Shown here one piece after another: positions 1,631 to 37,744 of a stretch of DNA of 41,392 nucleotides; position 1 is the first letter of the stretch; the number at the start of each line of letters is the position of its first letter. Source of the DNA: Perkinsus chesapeaki ATCC PRA-425. Its lineage: Eukaryota; Protista; Perkinsozoa. The DNA lies in assembly GCA_013115145.1 (NCBI GenBank), contig JAAPAO010000305.1, forward strand, positions 1-41,392, written 5' to 3'. The position numbers and the translations under genes are program-made. The notes under the pieces were generated by a model, which was given only the letters and a program-made list of their open reading frames with translations, had not been told where the DNA came from and made no database searches.

Positions 1631-3409
1631 ATGACGTCATACACCCGCGACCCCATCAGCAAGGCCGAGAGACACAGTCACTCCCTAGAGTGGTCTGACC
1701 TATCATTTGAAGTAAACCGCAAAACCCTACTCGGCAAGAGTCTCGGTATAAAGAAGATTCTCAAGAATGTGACCGGCTCCGCAGCACCCGGCGAAGTTGT
1801 GGCCATCATGGGACCTTCTGGCTCCGGCAAGACCTCCCTCTTGGACATCCTCGCGGACCGCGTCTCCTCCGGCAAAATCACAGGAGAGATTTGCCTCAAT
1901 AAAGTCACGCGTACGCCAATATCGTTTCGCGCGGTATCGGCCTACGTCGCCCAGGAGGACAGTCTCATGGGCTCATTTACTGTTCTCGAGACTCTACGCC
2001 AGAGCGCTCGCCTGGCGCTACCTAAGCGTGTGAGTCATGAAGAGAGAGAACGTCGGGTTCAACACGGTATCGATATTATGGGCCTTCGGTCCTGTGAACA
2101 CACCCTTATCGGTGACGTATTTCGTAAGGGCATCTCAGGCGGTCAAAAGCGCCGCGTGAGTGTCGCTATAGAGCTTCTCAAGATCCCTTCGGTCCTGCTC
2201 CTCGACGAACCGACATCTGGTCTGGACTCTGCCTCGGCCTTCAACATTATGGAGTATCTTAAGAAGCTCGCTCAAGAAGACCAATGCACTATCATCGTCA
2301 CCATTCACCAACCGAGCAGTGACATCTGGCAATCGCTCTCGAAAGTGTGTTTCCTGGTCGAGGGTAATGTGGTCTATTTCGGCCCTCCTGATAGAGTCCC
2401 CGAGTACTTCGCCGCTGCAGGCTACCCGGTACCGACTTTCACAAACCCAGCGGAGCACGTGATGAACCTGGTCAATACAGATTTCCCTGGTCACGGTGAT
2501 GTTCAAGGTCTCGTTGAACGCTACAGGAAAATCGAGAGCGAGCAAGCTGCGGCAAACATTAATGTTGATGAAGTACAACCATCACGAACTTTCACCGACA
2601 AGGAGATCTGGACCGCAGTGAGGCCGAGCAAACTACAGCAATTCTTCGCCTTATTGATAAGAAATTTCCAAAATAATGTCAGGAACCCCGGCATCTATTG
2701 GGTTCGTCTGGTCATGTACCTCATCCTGTCGTTCATGATAGGCACCATGTACATCCGCACCAACGACTCCCTCACACAAATGGACCAAGTACCGATGCTC
2801 TTCTATGTCCAGGCATTTCTAGTCTTCATGGCCGTCGCAGTTCTGCCCTTCTTTGACGAGATCCGGTCCGTATTCGCTCGAGAGCGTTCCAATTCCAACG
2901 TAAATGTCGCTGTCTTCGTCGCCGCCAACTTCCTGGCCTGTGTACCCGGTATCGCGCTCATCGCGTTGGTCTCTACCGCTATGGTCGTCGGCATCGCCGG
3001 ACTCCACTCGTTCGGCTGGTTCTATCTCAACCTATTCCTATCGATGGTTGTCTCCGAATCTCTGATGATGCTTCTAGGGGCAGCTACTCCCCACTACATC
3101 ATCGGGATCGCCTTAGGTGCTGGAATTTACGGAATGTTCATGTTGGTCTGCGGGTTCATGGTCCCGAGCGACCGCATTCCGCCTGGCTGGAAGTGGGTGC
3201 ACTACCTAGCCTTCCACACCTACGCATTTGGTGCCTTCATGTTTGCCGAGTTCGATGGTGAGCCCCCTCTCGGCGATGCCATTCTGGCCCAGTACAACCT
3301 CGAGGACACTGACCTCGGTCTCAACATGGTCGTCTTGGTCATTTGGACCGTCATTCTACAGATATCATTTTTCATCGCACTTTATTATCTTCATACTGGC
3401 CGGAGATAG
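1631..3409 (+). CDS. ABCG-family half transporter (NBD-TMD), intronless, 592 aa
   Basis: Walker A GPSGSGKT, Q-loop YVAQED, signature ISGGQKRRV, Walker B LLLDEPTSGLD, H-loop TIHQP, then a C-terminal multi-pass hydrophobic domain: ABCG/White topology. Confidence 0.95.
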   Translation: MTSYTRDPISKAERHSHSLEWSDLSFEVNRKTLLGKSLGIKKILKNVTGSAAPGEVVAIMGPSGSGKTSLLDILADRVSSGKITGEICLNKVTRTPISFRAVSAYVAQEDSLMGSFTVLETLRQSARLALPKRVSHEERERRVQHGIDIMGLRSCEHTLIGDVFRKGISGGQKRRVSVAIELLKIPSVLLLDEPTSGLDSASAFNIMEYLKKLAQEDQCTIIVTIHQPSSDIWQSLSKVCFLVEGNVVYFGPPDRVPEYFAAAGYPVPTFTNPAEHVMNLVNTDFPGHGDVQGLVERYRKIESEQAAANINVDEVQPSRTFTDKEIWTAVRPSKLQQFFALLIRNFQNNVRNPGIYWVRLVMYLILSFMIGTMYIRTNDSLTQMDQVPMLFYVQAFLVFMAVAVLPFFDEIRSVFARERSNSNVNVAVFVAANFLACVPGIALIALVSTAMVVGIAGLHSFGWFYLNLFLSMVVSESLMMLLGAATPHYIIGIALGAGIYGMFMLVCGFMVPSDRIPPGWKWVHYLAFHTYAFGAFMFAEFDGEPPLGDAILAQYNLEDTDLGLNMVVLVIWTVILQISFFIALYYLHTGRR

Positions 3410-3649
3410 ATTCCCACCGTAGCGGGAACTTAGCCGCTTTCCTGCTATGTGTCGCTCGGTGCTCTCAATGAAGCTTGTTGTTGGCTAGCACCTTCATTTG
3501 TTGTGTTGCAGCAGTTGAGCCATCGGACCAGTCACAGAGGGGACCGGTTTTACGAAGCTTTTCTCTATCAGATTTGGCGTGACATAACGCTACATCATTG
3601 ACGCTTTCGAGCCTTCAAAACACACCTTTGCCAGTCATTCTAATTGCCA

Positions 3650-5026
3650 ATGGCCTTCAATCCCTGGAAGGATCCATCTCAGTTCCCAGTACCCGCCAAA
3701 GCCATTGTCACCATCCTCGCAGGAGGTCTGGCCTCTGCTGTAGCTCTGAGGCTCGGCTACCACGTCTGCACCCGCTGGCTCTTCTATGATCGTCGTGCCA
3801 CTGCACTAGTTGATGGGTTTGCCAAACGACATCAAGAGCATATAAAACTTGTCGAGATAAGGCCGGGCCGTCGCATAGCTGTTTACGAGAACAAGTCGGC
3901 TGCGACGGGCGCGCCTGCATTGATCTTCATTCATGGTAGCTGCGCGCGAATGCAGCAATTCGAGGGTCAGATAGACTTCTTTGCCTCTCGTGGCTATCGA
4001 GTTCTCGCTCTGGACCTCTACGGTTGCGGTGCCAGTGACAAGCCGGATGACGCGAGCGCCTACCACACCGCACAACTCAAAAGCGACGTCGTGGCTTTCC
4101 TGGAGAAATTCTCAACACCAGGGAGCGTCGTCATTGGCCATTCCTATGGGGCCGCCATGGTCCTCGGCTTGTCCACGGATGAGTATCTGGTCAGCTGCCT
4201 CAGGCTCGCAGGCTTCGTTTGCATCTCGGTGCCCAACGCAAAGACTCTGGCGACTCGTGGCACTGTGTACCTTCGTGAGAAGTTCAACAAGCCTCGCTGG
4301 TGGCTGTGGCTCATTCGTCCGTGGGTGGGTCGCCAATTCAGAGCGATGTTGCTTGGTCCAACTGCAAGCGCTGATCTCTACCGGCAGGAGAAGGAGGCCA
4401 GCGCGAGGAACCCTGTTTATATGTACAAGGCATTCTACACCCAGTGGGATGCTGGGGCGCTGATCCCTAAGAATCACCAAGGAAGCCAGATTGATGGACT
4501 CTTCATTGTCGGCGAACTCGATAAGGTCGGCCTTGGACCAAAGATACTCTCGAATTCGCGTTGGCGGCCAGCGGAGATTCCGACTTACGTCCGCTGTACA
4601 ACACTTTTGCGTTTGCTGCCGATTTTGGCTCCATGCAGTTTTTCATGTTCAGGTCACCCCAGTCGAGTTCACGACAGCTTCAGTGGAAGAGGCCTCTAAG
4701 GGTCAACCAAACCGATCCTTCCAGGTAGAAGTTGTGAAGGACGCCGGGCACCAAGTAGGCGCCTCGTAGGGGCGGTGGTCGAGTTCTTAAACTCCATCGC
4801 GGACGCGCTACAGGATCACATTCATAGCAGAAAAAGTACCTCAAAAAGGGTAGACATGCTACCGGAACAAAACTTGCCGACCGACTGTCAACATATATCG
4901 TTCGTATCGTTGACGTGTTCCTGTATTGTTGGTTGTTCTACTTTCAAGGTCATGCAAGAGTTCCCGGCTACCGTCAACTCGAAGATATCTGACTTCTTAA
5001 AAGCGATCAACTTCACTCCTTTTTGA
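3650..5026 (+). CDS. Alpha/beta-fold hydrolase with N-terminal hydrophobic segment; exons 3650-4525, 4653-4754, 4949-5026
   Basis: IFIHGS oxyanion motif, ALDLYGCGASDKP, nucleophile GHSYG. Two phase-0 GT-AG introns join GELDK|VTPVE (catalytic Asp) and DAGHQ|VMQEFPATVNSKISDFL (catalytic His and final helix). Confidence 0.9.
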
Positions 5027-10639: not shown

Positions 10640-13600
10640 CTAATCCTGAGAGAAAAACGAGTATAGCTTGTTCCAGTTTCTCAAAAGACCCACCTCGACC
10701 GGATCGCTCGATGTTGGAGGCCAGAACTTGTACTTCTTCATGGCCTTGAAGGTCGCCTCCAAGCTGGCAGGCTGCTTCATCTGCGCCGCATTGACAATCC
10801 AAGTAGGTACAGATCCACCGACATCGACTTGGTTGTAAAATGATACCATCTTCTCACCGTCAACATCTCGGATAACATAGCCTGCATTATCGATGAAACC
10901 TCTGCAGTGATTGACTAGGAACTTGTGCTCCGGATAGTCGTTCCTGTCCACAGATCGAGTAGCGATCACTCCAAGTGTGGGGGACGGCATCTCGGTGAGG
11001 ACGGCGTAGACGAAATCGCGGCCGGCTACTCCCATTTGCTTCTCGTATGCAGCCCATGTGAGCACGAGAGATCTGCTAGGCGTCTTGAAGTAAGTCTCAA
11101 GATCTCTGCCGCTCTGGAATTGACTATCCCAAGTTTCCTTCACCGACAAGTCATTGATGAACTGCATTATCTGTTGAATGGTGTAGTCCTTACCAAAGCT
11201 CATCTTGCCGCACACCACTTGCCTCTCCGTGGAGGTTTGCGGTCTTACGAACAGCTCCACGTTACCCGACCGACCCTTCGACTTGAATGCCGGGTCCTTC
11301 TCAAAGGCCAATAATGCCTTTTGTGCCGCTAGCCCAGCGTCCATAGCCGCTTTCTCTTGTGGGGATTCTAGCTCTTGAGCTGATTCAACCTTGCCCGGCG
11401 CTGGGGTGGCTGCAAAGGGCGCCTGCGGAGCACTCGCGGATTTATCAGCGGGAGTATCCTGAAAATTAAGCTTGCGTTATGGTTAGTTGGCGGACATCTC
11501 ACCTTTTTCACTTCGGCTTTAGGAGCCTCGGCCGGTTTAGCGGTCGCTGTTGCCTTTGTTGCCGGTGGCACTGCAGGGACCGGAGTGGGCTTGAATTTGT
11601 AGTTCTTAATGGCAGCAAATGCCGATACCAAAGTCATAGGTTGTTTCATAGTAGCTTTATTAACTATCCATGTTGGAACTGAACCACGTACATCAACTTG
11701 ATTATAAAATGATACCATCAAATCGCCATTGTGAACCTTTTCGATAATATAACCAGCATTTTGAATGAATCCTCGACAAGCATCATTCGAGAATTTATGT
11801 TCGGGGTACTTTGGTAAATCAATCGATCGGCATGGCATAACAGCTTTATCTTCTGATATCTTCTCATTAACAGCAGCATAGATAAAGTCACGACCAGCAA
11901 CACCCATCTCTCCTTTATAAGATGTCCAACTTAAAGTAACTTCTTTCTTATCATCTTTTAAATAGTTTTCCAAAACTTTACCTTCAATAAGTTGATCATC
12001 CCAATTAACTTTATATGTCAAATCACCAAGGAATTCCATAACTTGTGATATAGTATATTCATGACCCCAATTCATCTTACCACATACAACTTGCATTTCG
12101 CTACCATTCTGTGGTCTAATCGATAACTCTACTGGACCGGACTTTCCTTTACTCTTAAATGATTTGTCAGTTTCAAATGCCAATAATGCCTTCTGCGCAT
12201 CAAGGCCAATCTTCATCATACGCTTCCCTTCATCACTCAAAACTGGCTCGGTCGGCGCTGCGGTGGTCTCCGCTGACTTAGCCTCAACTTCTTCAGCCGC
12301 CTGACAAACAAAGCCGCCATGAATTTTTTGCCTCTAATTTTCTTGGTCAAGTTTCGGAACTTCCCTATCAGAAGAACCTCGGTAATCAATGTTGGAAAAA
12401 CTCAGCGAAAATTTCGTCTCGCTACCATGTTCAGGTGAACCGGTGAATTTGGAACTAGCACTGTTATAACGATTATCAACCAGGAATCCTCCAGCTTCAT
12501 GAAAATATCTCCTCGGAGCTCTTACAGCATTCTCGCTGCGAGTATTAAAATAGAAGCTTGGATAGAAGATAGTTTTCCCCGTAAAAGAAGTATCCATCAA
12601 ATGCAGTCCCATTGGGAACATCTGATGTCCCTCAATACATTCTTCGAAACCGAACGAATGTATATTTCTTCTATATAAGACGCCAAAGAGATCCGAAGAT
12701 TATTAATATGACCTTGGTAAATGCAACGAAGTAATAACAAAATTTATAATAATATTATTTCTTCAAACTAGAGCAGATTTCACAACACAGCGCAAAGATT
12801 GTTGCAAAGTCTCCAACGACATGCAAGGAATTCAAACATCCGATGCAGACCTGGAAATTCCGAAACCCCCGAGACAGTATTACCTTTTTCACTTCGGCTT
12901 TAGGAGCCTCAGCCGGTTTAGCGGTCACTGTTGCCTTTGTTGCTGGTGACACTGCAGGGACCGGAGTGGGCTTGAATTTGTAGTTCTTAATGGCAGCAAA
13001 TGCCGATACCAAAGTCATAGGTTGTTTCATAGTAGCTTTATTAACTATCCATGTTGGAACTGAACCACGTACATCAACTTGATTATAAAATGATACCATC
13101 AGATCGCCATTGTGAGCCTTTTCGATAATATAACCAGCATTTTGAATGAATCCTCGACAAGCATCATTCGAGAATTTATGTTCGGGGTACTTTGGTAAAT
13201 CAATCGATCGGCATGGCATAACAGCTTTATCTTCTGATACCTTCTCATTAACAGCAGCATAGATAAAGTCACGACCAGCAACACCCATCTCTCCTTTATA
13301 AGATGTCCAACTTAAAGTAACTTCTTTCTTATCATCTTTTAAATAGTTTTCCAAAACTTTACCTTCAATAAGTTGATCATCCCAATTAACTTTATATGTC
13401 AAATCACCAAGGAATTCCATAACTTGTGATATAGTATATTCATGACCCCAATTCATCTTACCACATACAACTTGCATTTCGCTACCATTCTGTGGTCTAA
13501 TCGATAACTCTACTGGACCAGACTTTCCTTTACTCTTAAATGATTTATCAGTTTCAAATGCCAATAATGCCTTCTGCGCATCAAGGCCAATCTTCATCAT

Positions 13601-14705
13601 ACGCTTCCCTTCATCACTCAAAACTGGCGCGGTCGACTGCTCGACAACAGACTCCTGCTTCGAGGCCGGCTCTGCATTAGGCGCCTAAATACACTCGGAT
13701 GAGGTGAAAAAGATATTTCCGAAAGCCCTCACCTCCTCAACCTTCACAGGTTTCTCCACGGCGGGCTTTGATGGTTTATAAGCAGCCAATGCGTCCTGCA
13801 ACTTGGCCAACTTCGAGGGCAAAGCAGCCAGGGCCCGCTCAGCTATGAAAGAGGGGATGCTTCCGCCAAGATCAACTTGCTCAAAAAGCGATACAAAAAC
13901 GACGCCGTCGAGGGACTCGACGATGTAACCGGAATTCACAATTGTGCCGCGGACCAGAGACAAATCGTACTTGCCCTCGGGGTAGTCCACCAAGTCAAGC
14001 GAGCGACAGGAAATAACCGCTCTACTGGAGGAAAGCTTCTCAGCCATAACCGCAAACACGAAATCTCGGCCTTCCAAAACGGAGCCGAGATTGCGGGCTG
14101 CGGCCCAACAGATCGACACTGGCGGGTTGGCTTCGTTGAATTCCTCGATGACTTTCCAACCCTTGAAGCTAGAGTCCCATTTAGGGCGTGCATTGACGTC
14201 CATAAGGTACTCTACAACCTGGTCAACACTGTAGCCGAGGCCGACAGGCAACGCCGTCTTGCCAGCGATCACAGGAACACATCCGTTCGAAGATGGACGA
14301 ACAGAAATAGTGACCCCATCAACCACACCGGTCTTATGGAAAGAACTGTCTTCTTGAAAGCCGAGAAGGACCTTCTGAGAATCCTTGGCGACATCCCTCG
14401 CCGTCTGGGATAGTGGCTCACTGTAGACACGCGACGACTGTGTGGGGAGCGTCGGTACTGTGGTAGCGGGGCTCGGCGGGTGACCCACAGCAGTTGAATG
14501 GTGAGCAGTAGTAATCTGAACAACAAGTAACTGCCTAATCGACTCGGTTTAGTATTCTCCTCACCTCTTTGGGCTTTTGCTCCTTCCGAGCAGTTCCAGC
14601 TTCGGTTGGCGCTGTCGAACGAGCCGTGTGTTTCTGTCCGCTCGCTGCCGACTGGTGATTGGGCTCCGCGGTGAGCTTATCTTGCTTGGATGAAGTGCAT
14701 CCCAT
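10640..14705 (-). CDS. Putative N-acylated protein with four tandem START domains (~1,097-1,113 aa); exons 14705-14565, 14515-13733, 13684-12884, 12300-11503, 11458-10640 (optional intron 10693-10646)
   Basis: Four START ORFs joined by phase-0 GT-AG introns of 49, 48, 583 and 44 nt, with no stops across the junctions. Exon 1 starts MGCTSSKQ. Linkers are P/A/E/K-rich. The 583-nt junction is the least certain. Confidence 0.8.
11503..13630 (-). repeat. Internal duplication: START domain 2 (~12884-13630) and domain 3 (~11503-12250)
   Basis: About 750 nt near-identical, roughly ten visible substitutions and four amino-acid changes; both copies end at the same KAEVKK|GT donor. Confidence 0.92.
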
Positions 14706-15979
14706 AGTTAAAACAAATATGCAACTGCTCGAAGTCACTTTGCAAACTCGAGCTAGACACCGCACACCGACTGGGGCGCAAGATAAACCAGCGAACGCCT
14801 CGTCTGAGACAGTTAATTCGGCATCAAAAAGGAAGGCCCAAGAGCGATAATAGTAATATGGAAGTATGAAGCAACATAGCGCAATAAACACTATCTTTAG
14901 TTTCATGCTTCAACCCGACTCCCCAGCAGCAGACTACCATCCTTGTGGCGCACGCGTATTTTTGTGGCGCGCGGTCCGTCAAACTCGTGCCGGTGTGTTT
15001 TTAAGGGGCTCGAGGGACGGAAGAGAATACGGCCCATTACCCGTACCCGAACCAGTATCCCATACGAGATATATTTTATGTCTAGAAGGCTTCCTGGACT
15101 TGCGTCTCCGAGACATGCATTGCATTAGCACTATTTCACTAAGAACCTAGTAGCTTCTTAGTTAATAGGTTCAACATATAAGCACAACACAACATCCGCC
15201 GTGATTATGGTCTGTCGCAGAAGTAATACTGCAAGCCAGGCTCTACTGTATACTGGGACTTCCTGCACAGTGCAGAGTGCCAGTGCAGTGGTAAACATTT
15301 CGAGAAAATCTTACCTGTGAAGTGTTTAACGATACAACAGTATCAGGAGAGTGTGTACACAAACTTTGCGGACCATATGTAGTCTGGCTAAGCGCCGGTG
15401 ACACCAAACGCCCACTTTAGATTGCGTGTACTGTACGCATTTCCACTCCACAGCGGGCAAAATATTTATAGCACGCAACTGAGAAGACGATGGGGGACTT
15501 TCCTCGGTTACTCGCGACACGTACACTCGTAATCATAGTAAAAAGATATATTATTCATATTAATAATTATAACCGTCTAATTATTATACCAGGGTTCAGT
15601 TGCATTGATGAGTAGCATACTGTGCTAGACTTATCGAGTTATCCAAGTTGATAACTTATCTTGAGGACATCGGTTTGATTAGCTAGAGCGACGGAACTCG
15701 GTCCCAGAAGGATACTATCCCGGGAGCCAGGAACGAGACCTTAGACAACATTCTGCCATTATGAGAGTCATCAAACAGCACTACTAACACAGCTCCTTAT
15801 TTAGTATTCGAGGATAGCTTAGTGTAGAACGTGAGGAGGATAAATGCAACGATAGGCTAGCAACAACTGCAAGAGATTCGGAATTCTAAGCAATAAGGCA
15901 AAAATCTCAAGCAGATGTGGCAACTGCTGGCAGTCCGCAGCCGAATCATAAAAATAAAGCTTCCTCGAGTCAAAGTGAA

Positions 15980-20776: not shown

Positions 20777-22435
20777 TCAAAATGTAATAGGTCCTACGGA
20801 CACTAGTCGATGTCTGATACTCCACGAAGGTCTCCAGCATACCAGAGTTATCCAAGCGTGTAGGGTTACTCCAGAAGAGAACTCCCATCTGTTGAGAAGA
20901 TTATCGGCAGTGGCGATGGTCATGTCGAAAGCGATACTCGCACCAGCAATCAAAGTAGAATGGCTCACTCCGATTTTACCATAAACAGTCACAACGTTCT
21001 TGGGGGCAATAGTCAGTCCGATCTCGGCACTGAGGGTGAAGTCAATAATGCTGCCAATAATTTGTGCCCTGACACTGAATGATACGGAAGCTCCGACAGA
21101 TGCAGCCAGGGCCCCGGTGCCGCTCGAGTATTGTCCACTACCAGAAGCTGTCAGACACAGAGTAATGCGTAAGAATATACCCTCACCCATTTGCCACACT
21201 ATAGCACACCCTGCAGCTGTGACAGATAAGCCAAGATGTAGATCCTTGTTGTCGGGACTCAAAGAGTACCTTGCAGCCAGTGAGAATTCTAGCATCCGCT
21301 CCGGTTGGACCACATCGGGAAATCTAATGCCCACGCTGAGGCTCAAGGACGCCTGTAAACCGCTTCCATCACAATTGGCGAAAATACATATCTCATCCTT
21401 GCTGCCTCTGTCTTCACATGATAAAGGGAGTTGGAAATCAAAAAGAGTCATGAGCTTTCGCGGGCGGTTGCCGAGCTTGCCGAAATAACGAGCCGCAGCT
21501 GTTCCTTCCTCGATAGTGAAGTACGGTATAATTTCAGAGGACCGAAGACGCCGATGAGGCATCCAGTCTGCTGCATCCGGTGGGTGGCTGAAGTCGGTCG
21601 GTGTATAGCCGGAGAGAAGCTCGCCGCGCCAGTTCGAAAAGCCGTCGTCGAGGTCTTCGCGTTTCGGGTCGTCTGTTGCTTTGAGGACATTCTTGATACC
21701 GTACATCTCGTTCAACCGGTGGCGAGCATCTTCGGCAGATAACTGACCACTTTTCCTCTCGAAATTTGAGAACTTCATCTCTTGATGAACCACGTGATCA
21801 TGTCCACCATTCGTGGCTATAAGGTATACTGGCTTCTCATTGCGCTCATCCATATAGAGAGTCCAAGTGTCCGGTGCTAAGTTAGCCAAATATATACCAG
21901 AGAGGTTCGCACCAGTGGCGTTATCAACACCTTGGAAGCTTTCCTTGACCCATTCGTTAACCATCGCACCATCCTTCTTGACCGAGCCCCGAAAAAGCCA
22001 TCCATCATTCACAAGTGACGTAAAACCAGAGAGAGCAGGCGGGGCTGTACGGAAACGAGAAGCTGTCTGGCCAACGAGGTGGGACTCGCCATTCAAGATA
22101 TGTTCCACTATGAAAGAGTCAGCCGTCATAGTGTTGATGAAATACTGGTAGGGGTAGCTGGGGTGTGCTTCGACTTTGACCTCCGACCCATCACTTGCTA
22201 TAATCACGTGAGACCTTGTGGTGAGGGTACCATCCTCCATACCGGGTAGAGTGAGTCCAGCAGTCTCGAAGGCAATTGAACGGCTGCATGAAGCGGGATT
22301 CCCTTTGGCATCTTGAAGGCCGTCGATGCAGTGTCGCTTAGTCTCAACTTGGAACTCGTAATTATAATCGGCCACATTAGCGGCAATAATGACAGAAATG
22401 AAATAATGAGGGATCAAGAAGGTAGCTCTGGACAT
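20777..22435 (-). CDS. Secreted 552-aa protein: possible ependymin/LolA-like N-domain, basic processing-like sites, beta-strand-rich C-domain
   Basis: Long intronless ORF with a signal-like N-terminus; NEW...TWTLYMD...PVYL...FSNF pattern; HRRLR and RPRKL; alternating small/hydrophobic strands in the last ~190 aa. Fold calls are inference. Confidence 0.8.
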   Translation of the reverse strand: MSRATFLIPHYFISVIIAANVADYNYEFQVETKRHCIDGLQDAKGNPASCSRSIAFETAGLTLPGMEDGTLTTRSHVIIASDGSEVKVEAHPSYPYQYFINTMTADSFIVEHILNGESHLVGQTASRFRTAPPALSGFTSLVNDGWLFRGSVKKDGAMVNEWVKESFQGVDNATGANLSGIYLANLAPDTWTLYMDERNEKPVYLIATNGGHDHVVHQEMKFSNFERKSGQLSAEDARHRLNEMYGIKNVLKATDDPKREDLDDGFSNWRGELLSGYTPTDFSHPPDAADWMPHRRLRSSEIIPYFTIEEGTAAARYFGKLGNRPRKLMTLFDFQLPLSCEDRGSKDEICIFANCDGSGLQASLSLSVGIRFPDVVQPERMLEFSLAARYSLSPDNKDLHLGLSVTAAGCAIVWQMGEGIFLRITLCLTASGSGQYSSGTGALAASVGASVSFSVRAQIIGSIIDFTLSAEIGLTIAPKNVVTVYGKIGVSHSTLIAGASIAFDMTIATADNLLNRWEFSSGVTLHAWITLVCWRPSWSIRHRLVSVGPITF

Positions 22436-33994: not shown

Positions 33995-36900
33995 TCAATT
34001 CCGCAGGTCGTCGTCGGCTCGCCTACGCTTACTCGCCCTCGGCTGTTCTGTAGGGTAGTCGAGAACAGAGTTCTGAGTGGCCGCTTCGCTCCGCCTTTTT
34101 CGTCTCTGTCTCCGAGGTGAGTCGATCATTTCGAAGGCGAGGCTGGAACCGAGAGGGATCTCCACCGTGGGCGCACCACCGGCAACAGAGCTCTCAGGCG
34201 AGCTTGCCGGAGCTGCTGTGGCATCCTAGCAAGAGAGAGATATCAGATATGACAGCTACCATCGTGATACATGTTCGGCTGGGGAGTCTTCTGGAACGGG
34301 CGGGAGCGGGCTTTGGAGGACCTGAACATGCAGCTCGAAAGAAGATCGTAAGATTCCAAACAGGTTGCCTGGAAGCAGCGTACCGGATGAGCGATGAGGA
34401 GGAATTACTAGAACAAAGGGAACCTCAGACAGCCAACTAGATGGTAGAGTTTCGCCACCGTGGAGAAGGAACAAGCAGCTGACCGTCAGAGTCGAAAAGT
34501 CCTACGGCAGAGAGCACAGGTCATCTATCGCAGCTGACGGTTGATACAAAGTCACTAACATTGGAAACACATACACGTGATGACATTCCGTCCAGTAGAG
34601 CGATCTCAAAACCGGCACTTCTGCGCAATGACCCACCTTCGCAGCCAAGTTCATCGGCTCAGGCTCATCCATCTCCCTGGCACTGCGCTTAACCGCTGAC
34701 CGACTCCTCATCAGAGATCGCTTGCCCCTCGTACCCGGCGAAGGGGTGGTCATGTCGAAGGATGCCATCGTGGCTGCTAGGGGCAACGCGGGCAGTTGGG
34801 GCAAGTCAGCCGGGGTGAGCATGCTTCGGGTACGTGACTGACACTGGGGAGCTGGCGTCCGAAACAGGAGGGCCATGGACTCACAGACGCAATTGGCGTG
34901 AAGAGGCGCCGACTTTGCTCGGTCGGAGTGGTGGCCTGAAGGGAACAAGTCGACAGTGGACGGACAGAAGGATGCTGCAAATTATAGAAACCGAAACATT
35001 CTCCGAACTACATGCCAATCTGGTATCCCGTTTTCTTGAGTTAGCTGGTGCGCAACGGCTCGACGGTTGACCTACCCTGTTGAAATCTCCAAGGGCCTGC
35101 CATGCCCGATTGCCGGCCATCTCCCCACGTCTTCGTTCGATCGTCAAAGGTGTCGCCGGCACCAGCACTCTAGCTCGACGAACTGGTGACACTCTGCGAG
35201 GCAGGTCGGCTGGTGGAACGGGAAGCAGCGCCCCGTTGCCGTTCGCAGGGGAGATTAATGAGGATCCAAACGCAACTGTCACAGACGTCATCGACGCCAT
35301 CACGTCCGGCTCGGAGGCTCACTCTGTGGGTGGTCAAAGGCATCAGTGCTGAGTCGAATGCCCCTGGTCATCGGGGACAGAGAATCGTCATCATCGAAGT
35401 AGTCATCTGAAACGCTGTAGTGCCGATGGGCCAACAACGGGCCAGACCACCAAATATGCCAGAAGGGATGAATTGTTATAGGGACGGCTTTCTTATTAAA
35501 ATCCCTATTTTCACAGTAGTCGCAATTTTCAATCCTCGAGGAGCACATGCCAGGCTGGATCGGTCTCTAGCTCACATTCATCGGTGTGGCCTCCTCCGGG
35601 AATATGCTGGTAAATCTCAATATTGGCCACCTTCGGCTTATTATTGTACCTGGTGTATACTGTAGTGGGAGAACAGCATCGAGTCGAGATGACCGAGATT
35701 CCAGAATTGCCGTATCCAACACAACTTCGATGCTGGCTTGGCTTACCGTAGCATATGTCTCCCCCTCTCGCCCGGCGCCTTCTCCACCAGACTTGTCGCT
35801 TTCGCAACATCGCCTTCAGTCGATGACTTTCGTTTCCTGCACCGATTCATCTGAGCCGATACAAGATTAAAACGATAGAGAACGCATCCGGTAACATACC
35901 TCTTCAATAGCCGCTTCTTCCATGGACTTCCTGGACTTCTTCACTGGGCCAAGATCGACGATCTCAGGCTCCAGTTCCATCTCCTCAGTAGGGTCCTCCA
36001 TCACTATGCTGTTCTCGGCTCTCTTCCTCGCGACATCTCGGCGATCCTCGCGCTGAAGGATCGAAATACAAGTACACTCCAAGAGTGATATTTGGTGATT
36101 GATAAAAGAACATTATCCTACCATAGATACAGCTCTAAAGTAGACTGGGATCACCGAACTTGGGATGCAAAAGATTCCTCCACACAACTATTCCTGGTGC
36201 GAAGACAACCTCGATTTCACCTTTTCTAGATTCGCCTACATAACTTGCGCACCCTGTAGAAAGGTCGATGAGCCACATGCTTCACAACAGAAACGAACCT
36301 CTCTGGTCCGGCCAGGAGCTCCGCACCCACCCTCACAACTCACATGCCTGTCCGGATTGTTGCCAGCCTGTGCCCATATCTTTTCCAGGACCTCATCGTC
36401 CAAGTCGTAATCGAGATGCTGTAGACAGCGCTCCTGCAGCTCGACGAATGGTATTTGCCAGAGGCAATATGGCAGGACAAATCGCTCTAGGAAGTCGCAA
36501 GCGGTTGGCGGAATGTCCGGGCTGAGATCTCGCCACCCGAAGTCTTCCTGTATCTGCAGATAAAGCATCGCCTGCACTAGGTAATAAATTAGTGACACAT
36601 GTCACCCCTCCGATGTAGTCTAGCTGGTTAGGATTCGTGGCTCTCACCCACGCGACCGGGGTTCGAGTCCCCGCATCGGAACTTTTCTCACATTTTTTCC
36701 ATCCTTATTTTTCTCCATCAGCACTTTATCATGCAGATCCTCCATGTAAACCGCGACTTTATTATAAAGCTCTCCCGCGGCCTCCCACTCCCTCTCGCAT
36801 TCTTCTGCCAACGTTGGGTCATCGCGAGACTTCAACATATAAAGTATGCGGCAAATGTCGAGGTGAGCACAAAACAAATTCAACGCCATAGACACCTGAA

Positions 36901-37744
36901 AGGGAATAGCGCAACCGGACTTCTTCACAGTGGAACCTACCGATTTCAATTTCCTCTTATCTCCTTTCGAGAGACCCTTCTGGATTTGCGTCATAAACCG
37001 GCTGCCCGCGTAACTCCTCTCAACTGTGAGTTTGCACAGCGATTGTAGCACAGCCTCCACGTTGCCCTCGTCGATGGTTCCACTGGCGTGCTTGAGGAAC
37101 TCCGAAACCACTGTGTTGCTGAAAGACGAGTATTGTCCACACACATCCCCCGAGCTATGGCAGAGCTCATCGAATTGGCTTGATACGAAGTCATCAAGCT
37201 GAGCCTGACAGCAACGACTCCACGACCGAAGATGACCCAGTCTAACCTGGGAAAGGCATTCTGCCTTCACTGCCAGTACAGGTTGCTCTCTCGAGACCGG
37301 CTCAGCTTCCTGCGTCGCTCCAGCCTGACCCTCTGCTGTATGCTCGTCAGAGACTCTCTGCGTACTGCTGATCGTCTCATTCCAGCGCGGAGGCAGCGGG
37401 CCCTGAGAATCCCTCACGAATCGTGCGTCACGATCACCCTTCTTCATTTGAGCCCTATTTTTTCGTCACCAAATAAATTTCTCCTTGCTCGTCAAAATCC
37501 GGTCCGGAATCTCCTCAAAGATTCTCTCGCCCGCATATTCCAACACAAATCACCATCCAAGACATCCCATGGCCCCTACCGGCTCTGGACTGTTGCCCTT
37601 CACAACGGCCACCATCCTTCCATTCACTCGCTTCCATATTATCCTATCGGCAGCACCAGGCTTTATAGCCCCTTCCTCTCGCACTACGATCGCCGTGGAG
37701 CCTCCAGGGCAGCTTCGCCGGCTTGCTCGGACAGGAGACTGCAT
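33995..37744 (-). CDS. Large multi-exon protein of unknown function, probably nuclear (helical N-half, disordered SP/TP-rich C-half with basic clusters)
   Basis: Phase-compatible exons link ORFs 37447-36692, 36571-~36350, REDRRD...AIEE, MNRCRKRKSS..., 35303 frame, 34980 frame, 34948 frame and a last exon DATAAP...RRQRRKRR...SKRRRADDDLRN* (TGA 33997-33995). The 5' end and some junctions are uncertain. Confidence 0.6.
36609..36681 (+). tRNA. trnE-CTC: tRNA-Glu (anticodon CTC)
   Basis: Acceptor stem TCCGATG/CATCGGA, D-arm GTCTAGCTGGTTAGGAT, anticodon arm CGTGG-CTCTCAC-CCACG, T-arm CGGGG-TTCGAGT-CCCCG. Confidence 0.95.
36683..36698 (+). terminator. Pol III oligo-T terminator of tRNA-Glu
   Basis: TTTT at 36683-36686 and TTTTTT at 36693-36698, just downstream of the tRNA. 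Confidence 0.65.

Follow-up and report, generated by a model that had tools for sequence, protein, structure and literature searches.

Lipid-transfer proteins have mostly been studied as single-domain carriers, and the effect of domain copy number and tethering on lipid flux is an open practical question. The mammalian proteins STARD10, StAR (STARD1), STARD4, STARD5, STARD6 and CERT carry one START domain each and are targeted to membranes by a PH domain, a mitochondrial presequence or the MENTAL transmembrane domain. Membrane-anchored proteins of contact sites include metazoan Aster (GRAMD1) and yeast Lam2 and Lam4 (Ltc), which combine VASt (StART-like) and GRAM domains, are anchored by a transmembrane segment at the C terminus and hold one or two lipid domains. 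The yeast proteins Lam2 and Lam4 are cited as contact-site proteins with two tandem StART-type domains (PMC12705765).

Here we describe a gene of Perkinsus chesapeaki ATCC PRA-425, FOL47_005538, that lies on the minus strand at positions 14705-10640 of contig JAAPAO010000305.1 (assembly GCA_013115145.1). The whole 41,392-nucleotide (nt) stretch that was analysed is called the window below. The predicted product carries four START domains behind a candidate N-terminal acyl anchor, and on balance we favour the view that it is a lipid-transfer protein with an acyl anchor and several START domains, the middle type of which occurs in a variable number of copies. It belongs to the same domain family and has the same fold as the mammalian START proteins, but differs from them in the number of domains and in its putative targeting by N-terminal acylation. 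With the Lam and Aster proteins it shares the logic of a tether that holds several lipid cups.

Membership of the Lam/Ltc/Aster family was considered and is ruled out by the canonical type of the START domains, their number and the lack of GRAM, VASt and transmembrane segments. A Pfam scan of the P. chesapeaki protein returned PF01852 as its only family, with no GRAM and no VASt match, and no segment of the protein reaches transmembrane-level hydropathy.

A five-exon gene encodes four START domains

A scripted join of the exons yields a gene of five exons, each a multiple of three in length, which are linked in phase 0 by GT-AG introns of 49, 48, 583 and 44 nt. The joined product has 1113 amino acids (aa), a single terminal stop and the N terminus MGCTSSK. 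Four open reading frames (ORFs) on the minus strand of the window (13685-14488, 12755-13621, 11368-12240 and 10640-11344) mark the gene. An earlier reading of the window, the first-pass annotation, had proposed that four START ORFs splice in phase 0 through canonical introns to an exon beginning MGCTSSK, and our coordinates, splice sites and phases confirm this. It had also called the protein hidden, which is accurate relative to a prokaryote-style ORF list but not otherwise, as the gene is already in GenBank and UniProt. The features of the locus, in the direction of transcription, are as follows.

14725..14726, minus strand: trans-splicing AG acceptor; contigs of two RNA runs end at 14726
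14565..14705, minus strand: exon 1; ATG at 14705, 47 codons (MGCTSSKQ...), with a candidate myristoyl-Gly2/palmitoyl-Cys3 anchor and a polar tether
14516..14564, minus strand: intron 1, 49 nt, GT-AG; skipped exactly in contigs of two RNA runs
13733..14515, minus strand: exon 2; remainder of the N-terminal tether, START domain 1 (D1, divergent) and start of linker 1; START expectation (E) value 1.8e-14
13685..13732, minus strand: intron 2, 48 nt, GT-AG; skipped in a contig of one RNA run
12884..13684, minus strand: exon 3; linker 1, START domain 2 (D2) and first part of linker 2; AT-rich, with a G+C content at third codon positions (GC3) of 0.33; START E value 8.2e-14
12882..13626, minus strand: copy A of a 745-nt direct repeat (D2 core and linker, through the donor GT)
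12301..12883, minus strand: intron 3, 583 nt, GT-AG, GC content 0.39, the sole long intron; predicted from sequence, with zero RNA depth across it; contains no tRNA and no Rfam family and is not repeated elsewhere in the window
11503..12300, minus strand: exon 4; second part of linker 2, START domain 3 (D3, a near-copy of D2) and first part of linker 3; START E value 1.9e-14
11501..12245, minus strand: copy B of the 745-nt direct repeat (D3 core and linker, through the donor GT)
11459..11502, minus strand: intron 4, 44 nt, GT-AG; predicted, and present in the public model
10640..11458, minus strand: exon 5; linker 3, START domain 4 (D4) and stop TAG at 10642-10640; START E value 4.4e-07, 29.9 bits

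The public counterpart of this gene is KAF4663829.1 (FOL47_005538, 'hypothetical protein'), which is UniProt entry A0A7J6LX04 ('START domain-containing protein') and has 1097 aa. It maps to gene 10640-14705 of the same contig and is letter-for-letter identical to the five-exon product, except that the public model removes an extra terminal intron of 48 nt (10693-10646, minus strand). This segment is in frame and free of stops, so the spliced form, which ends ...PVED, and the form that retains it, which ends ...PVEVGLLRNWNKLYSFFSQD, are both complete proteins. A profile built from the four START cores and compared with 1.84 billion cluster representatives also retrieved this public protein, which scored 1567 bits over four matched stretches. 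FOL47_005538 is therefore a genuine gene, annotated in public but as yet unstudied, and our literature search found no paper that combines Perkinsus with a START domain.

All four exon-encoded ORFs score above the curated gathering cut-off of 22 bits for Pfam START (PF01852), at 54.1, 51.9, 54.0 and 29.9 bits, and the whole of KAF4663829.1 gives four PF01852 stretches with 178.5 bits in all. The domain chosen for structural modelling was D2, for which an AlphaFold2 model was computed from a 50-sequence alignment of D2 and its relatives. This model has a mean predicted local distance difference test (pLDDT) value of 96.8 and shows the helix-grip order, with a helix at residues 3-23, nine strands and a helix at residues 190-211. 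These results bear out the first-pass claim of four true START domains. Relative to D2, sequence identity is 35% for D1 and 56% for D4. The arginine of the conserved RDF motif is kept, and R117 and R156 are invariant across the 50-sequence alignment, which includes D1, D2 and D4.

When the D2 model was compared by Foldseek with the Protein Data Bank (PDB), the top matches were STARD10 (6ser), ACOT11, StAR, STARD5 and STARD4, with template modelling (TM) scores of 0.74-0.79; among Swiss-Prot models, StAR, STARD6 and STARD5 matched with TM scores of 0.80-0.84. A sequence profile search matched only STARD10 (6ser, 1.7e-10) and STARD6. Identity to the closest structures is 13-20%, and the top match is STARD10 by sequence but StAR, STARD5 or STARD6 by structure. 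Because of this low identity and these conflicting top matches, the ligand class is not assignable from the comparison, and a sterol and a phospholipid are both possible.

An acylation-type N terminus and polar linkers

The pattern recognized by N-myristoyltransferase is G-{EDRKHPFYW}-x(2)-[STAGCN]-{P}. The P. chesapeaki protein matches this pattern and has Cys3 beside Gly2, as do three orthologous models from other Perkinsus species (P0158, P0157 and P0159) and the paralogues P0008 and P0062. Across the four orthologous models, which represent three Perkinsus species, residues M1, G2, C3, S6, K7 and Q8 are invariant (M-G-C-x-x-S-K-Q). No transmembrane helix was detected over the whole protein, in which the best 19-residue mean hydropathy is 1.34, and the polar N terminus contains no signal peptide. 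Thus, N-terminal acylation is the sole candidate anchor. P, A, E, K, S, T and Q make up 71-88% of the N-terminal 78 residues and of the linkers, which number three and are 33, 49 and 59 residues long.

These two P. chesapeaki paralogues, FOL47_010236 and FOL47_010237 (P0008 and P0062; 347 and 365 aa), are encoded by a tandem pair on another contig. They share the MGC[TL]SSK N terminus (MGCTSSK or MGCLSSK), the polar tether and a START domain of the same family, but have one START domain each, and in a domain tree these domains group outside the D2 and D4 clades. Judged by these motifs, the predicted acyl-anchor and START design is that of a small Perkinsus family, not a one-off. The acylation-type N terminus and the flexible P/A/E/K linkers that the first-pass annotation had pointed out are both upheld, the former by its invariance in three species, its recurrence in the two single-START paralogues and the lack of another anchor, the latter by composition.

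RNA contigs place the 5′ end close to the MGC start codon

Four small RNA runs, two of which are 454 metatranscriptome runs, cover parts of the gene. Intron 1 is removed exactly (14564-14516) in contigs of the two 454 runs, and intron 2 (13732-13685) is removed in a contig of one further RNA run. In both 454 contigs the match to the gene stops at 14726, and the letters that follow have the reverse complement GGCCGTAGCCATTTTGGCTCA, which we take to match the 22-nt spliced leader of dinoflagellates. The body of the mRNA would begin at about 14724, leaving a 5′ untranslated region of 19 nt without an ATG upstream of 14705. With this leader-like tag 19 nt upstream and no earlier ATG, the codon that opens the MGC sequence is the first AUG of the message. 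Perkinsus mRNAs receive closely related leaders by trans-splicing (PMC3101222).

The middle domain varies in copy number among Perkinsus genes

A length-matched search identified a P. olseni protein of 1117 aa with four START domains (P0158). A second P. olseni model (P0157) is partial; it runs from D1 through three copies of the D2 type into the beginning of D4, which makes five START domains, and the P. marinus protein (P0159, 811 aa) has three: D1, one D2-type copy and D4. Domain order is the same in the orthologues of both species, and the middle domain is present in one, two or three copies in the available Perkinsus models.

In P. chesapeaki, D2 and D3 form a 745-nt direct repeat with 10 mismatches (98.7% identical) that ends exactly at the donor GT. 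A domain tree resolves three clades: one of D1, one that unites D4 with the adjacent single-START genes, and one of D2/D3. Within the last of these, D2 and D3 of P. chesapeaki are sisters (support 98/93), and D2 and D3 of P. olseni form groups of their own. This grouping indicates that the middle domain was duplicated separately in the species or was homogenized by gene conversion. The two copies also lie in an AT-rich island (about 11503-13626) that spans D2, D3 and the intron between them, with a GC3 of 0.33 and an intron GC content of 0.39. By comparison, GC3 is about 0.6 for the rest of the gene (D1 and D4), 0.51-0.65 for other ORFs in the window and 0.52-0.58 for the corresponding exons in the P. 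olseni and P. marinus orthologues.

We considered whether the repeat represents two alleles assembled in tandem. This was rejected, as the flanks of the copies differ, both copies are in frame and P. olseni independently has two or three copies.

Downstream of the gene, the window contains two complete single-START ORFs on the minus strand (8177-7540 and 6112-5474). Both are D4-like, start with MEDIKDAQK and end with ...SSSQA before the stop. Their identity to D4 is mosaic, at 88% across 245 nt and 66% across a further 300 nt, a hint of gene conversion. The public model KAF4663828.1 (435 aa, FOL47_005537) fuses the two through an intron of about 1.4 kb and looks like a merger of two genes.

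Multi-START chains in other organisms

To count architectures, we used 157 proteins with matches to the START profile, for the most part the closest cluster representatives. At least two START domains are present in 71 of these, at least three in 35, and four or five in 15; Pfam confirms three to five stretches in those that were checked. Sources of proteins with at least three domains include chytrids (Phlyctochytrium, Fimicolochytrium, Thoreauomyces, Irineochytrium and Chytridiales sp.), oomycetes (Achlya, Aphanomyces and Thraustotheca) and the transcriptomes of Lapot gusevi and Diphylleia rotans, and the Chromera velia protein Cvel_9658 combines a PH domain with two START domains. A features search of the ESM Atlas added only generic START clusters.

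The proteins from Phlyctochytrium (KAJ3111437), Achlya (OQS00790), Aphanomyces (KAH9154009), Lapot, Diphylleia and Chromera resemble the Perkinsus protein in that two to five START domains of the same subfamily are joined in one chain by long linkers. In contrast, none of those examined starts with MGC, and many non-Perkinsus multi-START proteins instead carry one membrane-targeting module, which is a PH, FYVE or Pex24p-like domain or a C-terminal hydrophobic region. They are not orthologues, as the best non-Perkinsus match has an E value of about 1e-44, compared with 0 within the genus.

The first-pass annotation had not recognized this architecture and had named its being common in databases as grounds for dropping the idea. 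Chains of three to five START domains prove to be frequent among its closest relatives, which come from chytrids, oomycetes, Lapot and Diphylleia, so the claim of an unfamiliar architecture falls for the multi-START arrangement itself. What is particular to Perkinsus is the predicted acyl anchor, which stands in for a targeting domain, and the varying number of START copies.

A candidate membrane-tethered lipid-transfer array

The most likely role of the protein, as predicted from its domains and motifs, is lipid transfer on the cytosolic face of a membrane. The first-pass annotation had suggested, as a conjecture, that such a protein might pass on or store lipids at a contact site or the plasma membrane. 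In the model that we propose, Gly2 of the roughly 1,100-aa cytosolic chain would be myristoylated during translation, and Cys3 would then be palmitoylated at a membrane. The N terminus would thereby be pinned to the cytosolic face of a membrane; by analogy with proteins of other alveolates that begin with MGC, the most plausible sites are the plasma membrane and the alveolar (pellicle) membranes. A stretch of about 70 disordered residues would precede the four START 'cups', which would hold one lipid each and be joined by flexible linkers of 33-59 residues. Such an array could raise the capacity for lipid extraction and delivery at the anchored membrane, and the linkers could let the cups reach an apposed membrane. 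D1, a divergent and probably old type, may have a ligand of its own. Because the middle domain is present in one to three copies between species or isolates, a role in capacity or dosage fits better than a fixed four-step relay.

A bolder and speculative proposal, to which we attach little weight, is that the START array is a fast-evolving, copy-number-variable device by which the parasite scavenges lipids. Intragenic duplication or gene conversion of the middle domain would have left the 2.1-kb AT-rich island, and the acyl-anchored, multi-cup protein would shuttle lipids taken up from the host between the plasma membrane and alveolar or endoplasmic reticulum membranes. Perkinsus may need external sterols, and a search of the literature on sterol auxotrophy gave nothing on the genus.

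Several observations weigh against an intact, anchored four-domain protein. The spliced-leader tag could derive from a primer, since the libraries are listed as reverse transcription-polymerase chain reaction products; even so, the tag marks cDNA that bears the leader. No RNA contig covers 12225-12995, so the evidence for joining exon 3 to exon 4 over the 583-nt intron comes from prediction and comparison. A search with residues 500-650 found no transcript-derived protein fragment that spans this join and matched only genome models of P. olseni, and an exact search of metagenome contigs did not find the spliced 12884/12300 junction. RNA is sparse over the 3′ half, where 6-7% of words sampled from the D4 stretch are present in the 454 RNA runs; 95-97% of that stretch is present in DNA runs of the same organism. 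A repeat that is 98.7% identical could also have been mis-assembled in copy number. Prediction of the full-length structure failed (pLDDT 28, from a four-row alignment), so the picture of independent beads comes solely from linker composition.

The gap in RNA coverage leaves room for two transcription units, in which an MGC-D1-D2 message ends in or just after exon 3, a D3-D4 mRNA is trans-spliced at the AG at 12302-12301, and the 583 nt are a spacer. The 583-nt segment is some 12-fold longer than the other introns and lacks RNA support, and the spliced-leader trans-splicing of Perkinsus (PMC3101222) can resolve closely spaced cistrons. Long introns in the annotation are suspect as well, as the model of the next gene merges two complete single-START ORFs through 1.4 kb, and the MEDIKDAQK with which those ORFs begin can be aligned with MMKIGLDAQK inside exon 4. 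However, exon 3 ends in a consensus donor (AAG/GTAAT, the slash marking the splice site) that belongs to the repeat unit and is reused at exon 4. The exon 4 acceptor, whose context TTTGTTTGTCAG resembles those of verified acceptors, is the exact point at which linker-like coding begins; the 20 codons between acceptor 12301 and the repeat are in frame and have linker composition, and the same frame has a stop codon 11 codons before the acceptor. Downstream of 12300, the first ATG is in another frame and starts an ORF of five codons. Longer introns of this gene also occur in relatives (289 and 172 nt). When the P. olseni P0158 protein is mapped on its locus, the introns measure 289, 53, 61, 53 and 60 nt, and D2 and D3 are separated by 201 nt that comprise a 61-nt intron, an in-frame 87-nt linker micro-exon and a 53-nt intron. 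Such a compact layout favours a single gene in P. olseni, a reading tempered by the fact that organisms with trans-splicing can also separate their cistrons by short spacers. Taken together, the P. chesapeaki locus is very probably a single gene, and division into two units is improbable.

If the chain is made as one, it could still be a polyprotein that is cut in its linkers to release single START proteins, several copies per mRNA. The two free-standing single-START genes just downstream, with a layout nearly identical to that of D4, suggest that the single-domain form works alone. A variable number of middle domains is what would be expected for dosage, and polyproteins occur in the neighbouring dinoflagellate lineage. 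Yet the linkers keep their composition rather than their sequence between species, with no recurring cleavage-site motif, although the absence of a motif does not prove the absence of cleavage. Only D1 would keep the acyl anchor after cutting, whereas the anchor and the order of the array are conserved in three species, and the single targeting module per array in multi-START proteins of other phyla likewise fits intact chains. We therefore regard processing of this kind as unlikely. An intact and anchored chain might, alternatively, not transport lipids at all and use its START domains as lipid sensors, buffers or protein-docking modules at the pellicle. Some START domains are regulatory, as in HD-ZIP transcription factors and RhoGAP/DLC proteins, and the fold match identifies no ligand class. 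This role appears doubtful, as no enzymatic or signalling domain accompanies the array and the closest solved relatives of the protein are all lipid carriers.

Neighbouring genes

The surroundings of the gene are partly conserved in three Perkinsus species, with the multi-START gene followed by one or more single-START genes and a convergent gene for an ABCG-type transporter, an alpha/beta hydrolase or both. In P. chesapeaki, a 906-aa model (1631-5026, plus strand) fuses the ABCG-type transporter and the alpha/beta hydrolase. P. marinus has the ABCG-type transporter only, and in P. olseni the hydrolase lies at the end of the contig (relatives' loci L001, 16315-17338, and L002, 14625-16400). 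This cluster of transporter, hydrolase and START genes may be a lipid-handling neighbourhood, or the combined model may be a fusion made in annotation.

Elsewhere in the window, a 552-aa ORF on the minus strand (20777-22435) is annotated with Pfam DUF6740. A tRNA-Glu (CTC) gene at 36609-36682 on the plus strand, found by ARAGORN and by Rfam (61 bits), overlaps the 5′ end of a minus-strand ORF at 36644-37447.

Implications

What is known of START domains themselves is unchanged by this gene. The locus offers a lesson in annotation, in that correct and probably wrong automated models stand side by side. Multi-START chains are common in chytrid, oomycete and protist databases yet have no experimental description in the literature that we searched. 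In Perkinsus, a culturable parasite of shellfish, there is a natural series of three, four or five START domains behind one conserved candidate acyl anchor, which would let capacity and relay models of lipid transfer be compared.

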